Of a stretch of DNA of 64,000 nucleotides, positions 9,883 to 49,350 are shown one piece after another (the first letter of the stretch is position 1; every line of letters starts with the position of its first letter). The position numbers and the translations under genes were made by a program. The notes under the pieces were generated by a model. That model saw nothing but the letters and a program-made list of their open reading frames with translations. It searched no databases and was not told the origin of the DNA. Origin of the DNA: Macrostomum lignano (Eukaryota); the NCBI GenBank assembly GCA_002269645.1, contig NIVC01000681.1, positions 1 to 64,000 of the forward strand, given 5' to 3'.

Positions 9883-10929
9883 TTAATCATTGTCCTCGGT
9901 AGATCGCAGTACCACAGTGTGTCCTCGTCTGCTGGATTTGGCAGTTTTGTTTGTCGATTTTTCCTCGACAATTTTGTCGCCCGTTTTGCACAAACCGCAG
10001 GTTCTGCGGCAGGCTGTGCTCACAAAGGATGTGCCGCACTGGCCTTTTTGTTTCAGGATTTTACATCGACGAACGGACATGATGTTGCGGCAGGCTGCGG
10101 GTTCGGGATTCACCTTGAGTTGTCTTTGGGTGACAAAGTGTCCGGAGTGTATAAGGCTTATGAGGCTTATATTGGTCAGAGAGGGGGCCAATAGAGACTC
10201 AGAGTCAGAGAGGGGACACCCATGGAGAGTCAGAGAGGGGACACCCATGGAGAGTCAGAGAGGGGACACCCATGGAGAGTCAGAGAGGGGGCCAATGGAG
10301 AGTCAGAGAGGGAAACCCATGGAGAGTCAGAGAGGGAAACCCATGGAGAGTCAGAGAGGGGGCCAATGGAGAGTCAGAGAGGGACACCCATGGAGAGTCA
10401 GAGAGGGACACCCATGGAGAGTCAGAGAGGGACACCCATGGAGAGTCAGAGAGGGACACCCATGGAGAGTCAGAGAGGGGGCCAATGGAGAGTCAGAGAG
10501 GGACACCCATGGAGAGTCAGAGAGGGACACCCATGGAGAGTCAGAGAGGGACACCCATGGAGAGTCAGAGAGGGAAACCCATGGAGAGTCAGAGAGGGAA
10601 ACCCATGGAGAGTCAGAGAGGGACACCCATGGAGAGTCAGAGAGAGACAGCCATGGAGAGTCAGAGAGGGACACCCATGGAGAGTCAGAAAGGGACACCC
10701 ATGGAGAGTCAGAAAGGGGGCCAATGGAGAGTGGACACCCATGGAGAGTCAGAGAGAGAAAATCCCCAAGCAGTCTCACAAGCCTTAGCCTTTTTAGTGT
10801 GGCAGAGTCCGCAGGTCCTTCTGCACATCTTCAGCATGGTGTAGGGGTTGCTGGCGCAGTGGCCCGCAGCCCGCCAGCGTCGGCACTTCTTGGCGGATGC
10901 GTCGTCTTTGCACATGAGCTCGGGAAACT
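9883..10929 (-). CDS. Exons 39-40: two ShKT domains and a C-terminal tail
   Basis: [37 protein letters not shown] and [35 protein letters not shown] both show the six-Cys ShKT pattern ending in CxxxCxxC. The stop is TAA at 9883-9885. Confidence 0.9.

Positions 10930-49350: not shown

Follow-up and report, generated by a model that had tools for sequence, protein, structure and literature searches.

A polycationic secreted protein of Macrostomum lignano joins an undescribed lineage-restricted eight-cysteine repeat to a VWD-type assembly module

Analysis of a 64,000-nucleotide (nt) window of the flatworm Macrostomum lignano genome (positions 1 to 64,000 of contig NIVC01000681.1, assembly GCA_002269645.1) reveals that the minus strand carries, from 49350 to 9883, one gene, Mlig022069.g3, whose product is a VWD-type extracellular assembly protein with its bulk made up of an undescribed, lineage-restricted repeat. 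What is new in this protein, as judged from sequence, is the strict alternation of two modules, A and B, in a unit of ~86 residues and eight cysteines that matches no Pfam family and no fold in the PDB and, among strong matches with a named organism, is restricted to flatworms. With regard to function, we see roughly an even chance that the protein is a stiff, disulfide-stapled, polycationic rod that multimerizes through its D assembly and binds polyanions, serving outside the cell to cross-link or scaffold a secreted gel or matrix.

When the minus strand from 49350 to 9883 is translated from stop to stop, many short open segments share a recurrent cysteine pattern and are followed by segments resembling VWD, C8, TIL and ShKT domains. 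Acceptors and donors were enumerated around each of these, and nearly all module segments proved to be bounded by AG/..C-P-K and ..C/GTRAGT in phase 1. Spliced from the raw sequence, the gene comprises 39 coding exons of 123-320 nt that encode 2,136 residues with zero internal stops; it runs from an ATG at 49350 to a TAA at 9885-9883, with AATAAA ~45 nt past the stop, and all 38 introns are of the GT-AG type, 36 of them in phase 1. These are the limits that an initial annotation of the window, made from sequence alone, had given to the gene. The spliced model is 100% identical to GenBank PAA78532.1 (M. lignano BOX15_Mlig022069g3, 'hypothetical protein'; UniProt A0A267FZY8; 2,136 residues), and the span annotated for Mlig022069.g3 on NIVC01000681.1 in the Mlig_3_7 assembly agrees with the window coordinates. 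Because that annotation was guided by RNA sequencing (a genome-guided transcriptome, assembled with StringTie/TACO from RNA-sequencing data together with a de novo transcriptome; PMC5730564), the 39-exon structure has transcript support and the locus is a single gene. We regard the identity and architecture of Mlig022069.g3 as near certain. The protein had been put forward as undescribed; this holds insofar as it is functionally uncharacterised and no functional study was located, but databases have listed it as a hypothetical protein, PAA78532.1 and A0A267FZY8, ever since the Mlig_3_7 genome was released. The gene identifier and accessions occur in no paper that we located, nor in the supplements of four Macrostomum papers.

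A bacterial-style list of open reading frames (ORFs) displays the gene as fragments only, in keeping with the earlier remark that short exons lie scattered between satellites. To complete the model, hidden Markov models (HMMs) of both module types were run against the six-frame translation of the whole window, which added one module at 39245-39117 (E=3.5e-9), flanked by good splice sites, and disclosed no further module on either strand. A first model of 38 exons and 2,092 residues, in which A/B alternation was broken, was accordingly dropped; the missing B exon is exon 15 (39116-39247; acceptor CTACTGCAG, donor GCC/GTAAGC), found by the HMM search alone, and its inclusion restores strict alternation. 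Also rejected were an extra exon in the ORF at 27089-26841 ('ELRCESC...'), which is present in the ab initio model P0009 but has poor splice sites and is not in PAA78532.1, and two alternatives for the C8 exon (acceptor 13747, and a phase 0 pair at 14377/13758), the acceptor at 13726 being confirmed by the identity with PAA78532.1.

The initial annotation counted 40 exons and 2,193 residues. Its frame is truly open and equals our 39-exon model plus one segment between exons 1 and 2, at 48481-48311, but this fortieth exon finds no support in the RNA-based annotation. The segment (171 nt, 57 residues) would encode an in-frame linker rich in alanine, proline and lysine, with phase 1 at both ends, an acceptor reading ...CCCGCAG and a GTTAGA donor, and it is included only in the ab initio UniProt model A0A1I8IWZ4 (P0023), not in PAA78532.1. 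It is 100% identical in a second copy of the locus, as are its flanking introns; since introns of the two copies are also ~99% identical, this comparison carries no weight for or against the exon, which may be an alternatively used cassette exon or a segment that is open by chance. The same model, A0A1I8IWZ4, joins open segments at ~50.6-50.9 kb (50594-50869, minus strand) to the start of Mlig022069.g3, an error of the older automatic prediction. A homologue search with the C-terminal 600 residues likewise returned fragmentary, mis-spliced M. lignano UniProt entries (A0A1I8F5N1 and A0A1I8JP74) with long stretches identical to the window; the older automatic models were split into several such fragments because the introns are filled with satellites.

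The encoded protein opens with a signal peptide (residues 1-42), specified by exon 1 (49224-49350), which begins at the start codon and ends at a phase 1 donor (ATG/GTGAGC). Two arginines precede a 15-residue hydrophobic core (residues 21-35), and the protein contains no second hydrophobic segment. Residues 43-1667 (~1,625 residues) constitute the repeat region, in which lysine and arginine together account for 28.3% of positions, aspartate and glutamate for 7.4% and cysteine for 9.4%, giving a net charge of +340. The protein as a whole has an isoelectric point of 10.2, four N-glycosylation sequons, 13% serine plus threonine and 3.9% proline. VWD, C8, TIL-like and two ShKT domains complete the chain. 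The signal peptide, the charge, the Pfam matches and phmmer alignments together bear out the initial description of a secreted, strongly cationic cysteine-repeat protein ending in VWD-C8-TIL-ShKT-ShKT; the same domains had also been called its 'head', which is right as to their identity but only a figure of speech as to their place, since they are located at the C-terminus.

The repeat region is assembled from two kinds of module. Module A (~41 residues) has three cysteines (CPKxxxxxxC...C....) and a mean net charge of +8.2, and module B (~43 residues) has five (C-x10-C-xxxGY-...-CxC-x10-C) and a mean net charge of +9.6; together they form a unit of ~86 residues with eight invariant cysteines, C-P-x7-C ... 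C ... C-x10-C ... CxC-x10-C. Mlig022069.g3 encodes ~19 such units in tandem (about 37 modules), 16 of them canonical and the others divergent. Alternation of A and B is strict: the order returned by the HMMs is ABBABAB...A, where the apparent BB stems from an atypical A module in exon 4, and exon 20 encodes a divergent unit. Aligning 40 units from five proteins leaves the eight cysteines as the sole invariant columns, at a mean column identity of 25%. Pfam places no family on these 40 units (only seven single-member chance hits were returned), nor does it report any match in the first 693 residues of the protein.

One module normally corresponds to one exon with phase 1 at both ends. Splice sites (AG/GT) and phase were checked exon by exon, and the E-values that follow are those of the A- and B-module HMMs; all exons lie on the minus strand. 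The array begins with exon 2, a short linker plus an A module (47055-47213, phase 1-1, E=2.9e-12), and exon 3, a B module (46705-46848, 1.9e-14). Single A modules are further encoded by exons 5 (44644-44766, 7.6e-15), 7 (43236-43358, 1e-16), 9 (42561-42689, 2.4e-14), 11 (41788-41910, 7.9e-14), 13 (41039-41161, 7e-14), 16 (37830-37955, 1.8e-13), 18 (35507-35638, 3.8e-11), 21 (33181-33303, 3.6e-15), 23 (32061-32186, 2.3e-13), 25 (28732-28857, 6.6e-14), 28 (20157-20282, 2.3e-13) and 31 (17844-17966, 1.2e-14), and the last A module, in exon 33 (16666-16806, 5.5e-10), abuts the VWD domain directly. Exon 21 is the segment that had been singled out, as exon 22 of the longer model, for its 13 lysines and arginines among 41 codons, a count that its translation reproduces. 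Single B modules are found in exons 6 (43436-43567, 4.7e-15), 8 (43025-43156, 3.7e-14), 10 (42346-42477, 4.1e-14, donor GCC/GTACGT), 12 (41579-41704, 2.7e-14), 15 (introduced above), 17 (37398-37547, 6.3e-14, with a six-residue insert), 19 (35281-35412, 1.4e-15), 22 (32969-33097, 7.4e-14), 24 (31845-31976, 1.1e-12), 26 (27957-28088, 7.4e-17), 30 (18055-18186, 4.4e-16) and 32 (16899-17027, 6.1e-13). Five exons hold two fused modules: exon 4 (44848-45099), in which the atypical A-like module precedes a B module recognized in the second half (1.1e-11); exon 14 (39971-40225), B plus A (1e-10 and 9.1e-13); exon 20 (34312-34614), the divergent A+B unit, a 303-nt open frame with AG/GT boundaries and phase 1-1 that has nine cysteines, lacks CxC and is missed by the module HMMs; exon 27 (23580-23849), a complete A+B unit (A 1.5e-10, B 2.5e-13); and exon 29 (19064-19318), B plus A (4.6e-16 and 8.4e-15).

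The repeat is modelled with very high confidence. AlphaFold2 models the A+B unit of exon 27, supplied with 38 homologous units as alignment, as an all-beta structure with a mean predicted local distance difference test score (pLDDT) of 96.3 and a predicted template modelling score (pTM) of 0.66; the B-to-A junction encoded by exon 29 is likewise all-beta (pLDDT 96.4, pTM 0.68). Each modelled module combines a short strand with two others of 11-13 residues in a three-stranded beta ribbon. The linkers from A to B and from B to A are one residue long, and pLDDT stays as high across both junctions as within the modules. A Foldseek search of the PDB with these models returned best E-values of 0.28 and 0.54 at template modelling scores of at most 0.39, disclosing no analogue among solved structures.

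A check independent of the AlphaFold2 models comes from cysteine covariation. In some B modules, an extra cysteine shortly after the second B cysteine accompanies another at the B-to-A linker, creating a 'CCC' junction. Across 248 B modules of 18 family members, the two cysteines occur together in 52, singly in five and not at all in 191 (Fisher p=3e-47). Two such ten-cysteine units occur in Mlig022069.g3, where exons 6 and 24 encode the covarying pair, with the linker cysteine in the sequence ...VKCCCPK.... This pattern is what an optional fifth disulfide tying the B loop to the inter-unit linker would produce, and it argues for truly folded modules and for rigid coupling from unit to unit. 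UniProt attaches automatic labels to fragments of this locus ('CTCK domain-containing' and 'VWFA domain-containing', on P0129/P0023), of which the CTCK label sits on B/A repeat modules; it may reflect a spurious profile match on a cysteine-rich repeat or hint at distant kinship with cystine knots.

The repeat defines a family of its own. A search with the 1,667-residue repeat region returned five proteins, all giant (1,727-2,723 residues) and all made largely of A+B units, among them M. lignano P0012, P0013 and P0014 and one protein from the trematode Echinostoma caproni. Of 1.84 billion representative proteins scored with a profile built from the unit, only 106 match, 62 of them at E<=1e-10, and the best carry up to 49 repeats. 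Thirty of the 106 were looked up; among these, every strong match with an organism name is a flatworm, and the sole named non-flatworm match, from Dreissena, is weak and partial. Members occur in cestodes (Echinococcus, Sparganum, Dibothriocephalus), in trematodes (Echinostoma, Paragonimus, Dicrocoelium, Calicophoron, Trichobilharzia) and in monogeneans (Cichlidogyrus, Protopolystoma), and Macrostomum has at least eight such genes. The domains that accompany the repeat are VWA, VWD and ShKT. All members are basic, with lysine plus arginine at 17-30% in the Macrostomum paralogues versus 15-19% in named parasite proteins; the exaggerated charge of the former suggests a lineage-specific specialization.

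Three uncharacterised Macrostomum paralogues, BOX15_Mlig016097g3 (P0012, 2,723 residues), Mlig019034g1 (P0013) and Mlig026472g1 (P0132), are strongly basic and share the eight-cysteine A+B repeat, although repeat identity between paralogues is only ~22-23%. P0012 and P0013, whose N-termini read as signal-peptide-like, also contain the VWD-C8-TIL-ShKT-ShKT cassette; the D-assembly region of Mlig022069.g3 is 31% identical to that of P0012 (E=2.6e-45) and 26% to that of P0013. The order of parts differs, however: P0012 has the cassette at its N-terminus, ahead of the repeats, whereas P0013 has it in the centre, with VWA before it. The domain combination that the initial annotation could not recognise is thus a family trait, because these paralogues, the nearest relatives of the protein, carry the same cassette and repeats in other orders.

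This distribution bears on whether the protein is a gland secretion at all. It might instead belong to the extracellular matrix of the body wall or the basal lamina, as a flatworm-specific microfibril component that binds matrix proteoglycans. Relatives in parasites and in Macrostomum itself join the same repeats to VWA, one from Echinococcus having been named automatically 'collagen alpha-3(VI) chain'; the family is conserved all the way from Macrostomorpha to Neodermata, which speaks for a general function in tissues, and it is basic throughout. The automatic names, however, rest on VWA domains alone, and Mlig022069.g3 has no VWA but a mucin-type D assembly with GDPH, plus ShKT, features more typical of secreted gels. 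In addition, the existence of at least eight Macrostomum paralogues with exaggerated charge suggests specialization beyond a housekeeping matrix. We consider a matrix role rather unlikely for this protein.

A second setting compatible with the phylogenetic spread is the reproductive tract, where the protein could come from a cement or shell gland and serve to fix or coat eggs, or could be a constituent of prostate secretion or seminal fluid. Macrostomum has cement glands, complex egg coverings are made by every flatworm group in which the repeat family occurs, and a polycationic, cross-linkable fibre would be well suited to attaching eggs or forming capsules. Rapid evolution of reproduction genes would also fit a rapidly diversifying family, and reproduction-related genes of Macrostomum are reported as fast-evolving (PMC7336406). 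We judge such a secretion unlikely. Occurrence of the family in endoparasites, together with its association with VWA, favours a general role in matrix or reproductive secretion.

The C-terminal part of the protein belongs, by its sequence, to the VWD-C8-TIL class of D assemblies. The VWD domain (PF00094, E=1.6e-27, 97.1 bits against a cut-off of 22.9, profile positions 1-155 of 156) is split between exon 34 (16335-16576), which encodes its first half with GDPH at residues 1674-1677, and exon 35 (14345-14664), which encodes the second half with a GLCGNCNG motif. C8 follows directly in exon 36 (13431-13726; PF08742, E=5.2e-8, 33.5 bits against a cut-off of 23.7). The TIL-like domain of exon 37 (11984-12175) has no Pfam TIL match at E<=1, but phmmer alignments to FCGBP, VWF and MUC5AC span the TIL region with cysteine columns matched, and the domain can be matched, column by column, to TIL in the D assemblies of FCGBP, VWF and MUC, having nine cysteines in place of the canonical ten. 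When solved structures are searched by sequence, residues 2-349 of the C-terminal part (~350 residues) align with the D assemblies of FCGBP, MUC5AC, VWF, MUC2 and MUC5B; each FCGBP repeat scores ~70-96 bits (1.1e-141 summed), MUC5AC gives 6.7e-40 and VWF 3e-33. FCGBP likewise has a GDPH at the position aligned with the one that opens VWD here. The best non-flatworm matches to the D assembly are molluscan 'zonadhesin-like' VWD-C8-TIL proteins (Pinctada, Elysia, Mizuhopecten; 34-38% identity over ~360 residues), which differ in having several D assemblies plus EGF or lectin domains and in lacking both the eight-cysteine repeat and the ShKT pair.

Two ShKT domains close the protein. These domains are defined by ~36 residues with six cysteines (C-x8-C-x8-C-x10-C-x3-C-x2-C). 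Both domains show the complete six-cysteine pattern ending in CRRTCGLC, and Pfam ShK detects two stretches at 20.3 bits, 0.6 bits under the cut-off of 20.9. Exon 38 (10780-10929) encodes the first; exon 39 (9883-10094) encodes the second, a hydrophilic tail and the TAA stop, with AATAAA downstream. UniProt tags a near-identical copy 'ShKT domain-containing'. The ShKT fold is known from sea-anemone potassium-channel toxins, and the pair, together with the very high positive charge, could be taken to mark a polycation with a defensive or antimicrobial function, or else a carrier of toxins, its rod binding microbial surfaces and its ShKT domains serving as channel-blocking modules. We hold this to be highly improbable: ShKT is a common non-toxic module of secreted matrix and mucin-like proteins, a 2,136-residue chain with a multimerizing D assembly does not resemble the antimicrobial peptides or toxins known so far, and the sequence has no processing sites that would free the ShKT domains, furin-type RX[KR]R motifs numbering only five and being scattered.

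The architecture that we favour, a polyanion-binding, multimerizing rod, would operate as follows. The repeat array would form a stiff, disulfide-stapled rod carrying ~+340 charges; at ~3-4 nm per module of 12-residue strands, an end-to-end arrangement would make it longer than 100 nm. The partners that this rod would bind, mainly electrostatically, would be polyanions: glycans that are sulfated or acidic, for instance, or polymers of mucus or proteoglycans of the matrix. By analogy with VWF, gel-forming mucins and FCGBP, the D assembly would link molecules into disulfide-bonded multimers; D assemblies multimerize VWF and mucins. The GDPH at the start of VWD may self-cleave, as this motif does in MUC2 and FCGBP, and after cleavage between GD and PH either the rod would stay tethered to the assembly module through a disulfide or a reactive end would arise that could be cross-linked. 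The net role would be that of a polycationic cross-linker or scaffold, for which gland secretion or mucus, body-wall matrix and reproductive secretions are candidate settings. Given the resemblance of the D assembly to those of VWF, mucins and FCGBP and the tight joining of the modelled beta ribbons, the initial proposal of a polymerizing, substrate- or glycan-binding fibre appears reasonable.

Several points weigh against this proposal. The rod geometry is deduced from secondary structure, linker length and model confidence, and polyanion binding from charge. The CGLC motif that is canonical in VWF D1/D2 is replaced by VGLCGNC. Moreover, in contrast to FCGBP, mucins and VWF, the protein has a single, C-terminal D assembly, no VWC, no CTCK (Pfam gives no cystine-knot match) and, by composition and module scan, no PTS stretch, its central region consisting of cysteine modules; having one D assembly and neither CTCK nor VWC, it cannot simply be assigned the head-to-head plus tail-to-tail scheme of mucins and VWF, and the absence of PTS and CTCK domains and the single D assembly mean that it is not a gel-forming mucin. 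Nor is GDPH kept in the D assemblies of paralogues, where it reads GDPY in P0004 and is absent from P0012 and P0013, so that self-cleavage at this motif is not a family trait; GDPH is found only in Mlig022069.g3 when this is compared with P0012, P0013 and P0132. A literature search for expression, localisation, biochemical or knock-down data on Mlig022069.g3 returned none.

The initial annotation had suggested an adhesive protein, and a third structural component of the duo-gland temporary glue, in the form of a cohesive polycation like Mlig-ap1 from the adhesive gland cells of the tail plate, deserves separate consideration. Mlig-ap1 (Wunderer et al. 2019, PMC6410801) comprises 5,407 residues, with cysteine-free GRK/KR low-complexity regions (pI ~14) at both ends, a C-type lectin, VWD-C8-TIL and 17 cbEGF domains, and is proposed to act by charge on glycans; Mlig-ap2 has 14,794 residues, 46 large repeats and TSP-1 and LDL domains (PMC6410801). 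Like Mlig-ap1, the Mlig022069.g3 product is a giant, secreted and extremely lysine- and arginine-rich protein of the same species with one VWD-C8-TIL assembly. Length and domain content nonetheless rule out identity with either glue protein. The charge of PAA78532.1 sits on folded modules with 9.4% cysteine, whereas the charged regions of ap1 and ap3 proteins, and likewise those of proseriate glue proteins, are cysteine-free GRK low complexity; conversely, Mlig-ap1 has no ShKT. Pfam detects no lectin in PAA78532.1, and its sole EGF signal is a weak EGF_3 match (E=0.028) under the cut-off and inside TIL. Lacking lectin, EGF and GRK regions, PAA78532.1 is not an ap1-type adhesion protein.

Other observations point the same way. 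The glue study names only two adhesive proteins, and two in situ screens of the tail together with its authors' own work gave no more candidates (PMC6410801). In the accessible part of the footprint and tail mass spectrometry tables, none of 12 predicted well-sized tryptic peptides, which come mostly from the less basic C-terminal part, is present, and other VWD proteins do appear there; absence from such partial tables is weak evidence. The glue authors noted for Mlig-ap1 that proteins dense in lysine and arginine are poorly covered by tryptic mass spectrometry, so that the protein could have been missed. Cestodes, trematodes and monogeneans, which to our knowledge have no duo-gland organs, share the repeat family. 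The lack of further screen candidates, the missing peptides in those partial tables and the use of GRK low complexity by other glue proteins thus disfavour a role in duo-gland glue, which we consider possible but improbable. Sea star Sfp1 offers a more distant comparison, as a large, secreted, cohesive protein with 5% cysteine that is cleaved into disulfide-linked subunits; its accompanying domains differ from those of PAA78532.1, and, by its description, it is set apart in being neither polycationic nor endowed with the flatworm repeat. Mlig-ap1 has itself been compared with Sfp1 for its carbohydrate- and metal-binding features (PMC6410801).

A broader proposal, which we advance as possible though doubtful, is that the ~86-residue A+B unit is a structurally new, flatworm-specific extracellular domain, that its tandem arrays form rigid disulfide-stapled rods, and that the hyper-cationic Macrostomum members, the Mlig022069.g3 product among them, are polyanion-binding cohesive fibres, possibly a missing structural class of flatworm mucus, glue or egg attachment and a matrix component shared with Echinococcus, schistosomatids and Paragonimus. 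If true, flatworms would own a family of giant extracellular proteins based on a repeat that neither curated databases nor solved structures cover. A family spanning free-living models and medically important parasites could offer lineage-specific markers of matrix or secretion, as well as antigens. Macrostomum would then possess a second, structurally different class of giant polycation, and folded cysteine modules and disordered GRK regions would make a natural comparison. Macrostomum is the best-understood model of temporary adhesion, charge is central to its glue mechanism, and the gene is a candidate for RNA interference and in situ hybridization. Finally, a small, confidently modelled, disulfide-stapled beta ribbon with one-residue linkers would be attractive for stiff, charged biomimetic fibres.

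The introns of Mlig022069.g3 are themselves unusual. Tandem repeats (arrays scoring >=200) occupy 48% of the window, and 24 of the 38 introns contain a minisatellite array of their own, built on a wide variety of repeat units; 68% of intron bases lie in these arrays, and no exon overlaps a repeat. Examples are (GATT)n at 45104-46588, a 44-mer at 35780-37330, a 24-mer at 20397-22401 and a 15-mer at 12241-13367. Most of the 14 introns that have no array measure 77-94 nt. A-to-B introns, within a unit, tend to be short, and B-to-A introns, between units, tend to be long and filled with satellites. One purine-rich 8-mer array, (AGAGGGAG)n, is present both in intron 14 (39385-39944) and ~3.5 kb upstream of the start codon (52912-54001).

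The second copy of the locus lies at 4816-49783 of NIVC01000680.1, with exons 94.5-100% identical to those of the window and unique intron sequence ~99% identical. Between the two copies, introns that lack satellites vary in length by at most 1 nt, whereas most of those with satellites are of different lengths, some of them several-fold (1,605 vs 211, 3,297 vs 5,459 and 1,054 vs 5,562 nt). The contrast indicates that the gain and loss of array length far outpaces the accumulation of point substitutions, with the reservation that differences in satellite length could be sensitive to assembly. At 9949-10070 of NIVC01000680.1, which corresponds to the window exon at 43358-43236, the second copy has a 1-nt gap, and because of it the annotated product, PAA78542.1, is short (1,806 residues) and starts inside the repeat region; the gap could be a real frameshift in a decaying duplicate or an indel error of long reads.

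Inside intron 26, GenBank annotates a 210-residue protein on the plus strand (27132-27795) that falls almost entirely within a 30-bp satellite (27183-27735), and the second copy has an equivalent call of 205 residues. The 27132-27795 feature is more suggestive of an ORF derived from the repeat, or of antisense transcription across the satellite, than of a real gene. Scanning the window for Rfam families and tRNAs returned no match. Two annotated genes flank Mlig022069.g3: upstream, at 54242-59350 on the minus strand, one encoding 459 residues with no Pfam match, and downstream, in convergent orientation at 1813-4817 on the plus strand, a TRAF/MATH-domain gene encoding 539 residues, with a zinc-finger region in the ORF at 1780-2643 and MATH matches.

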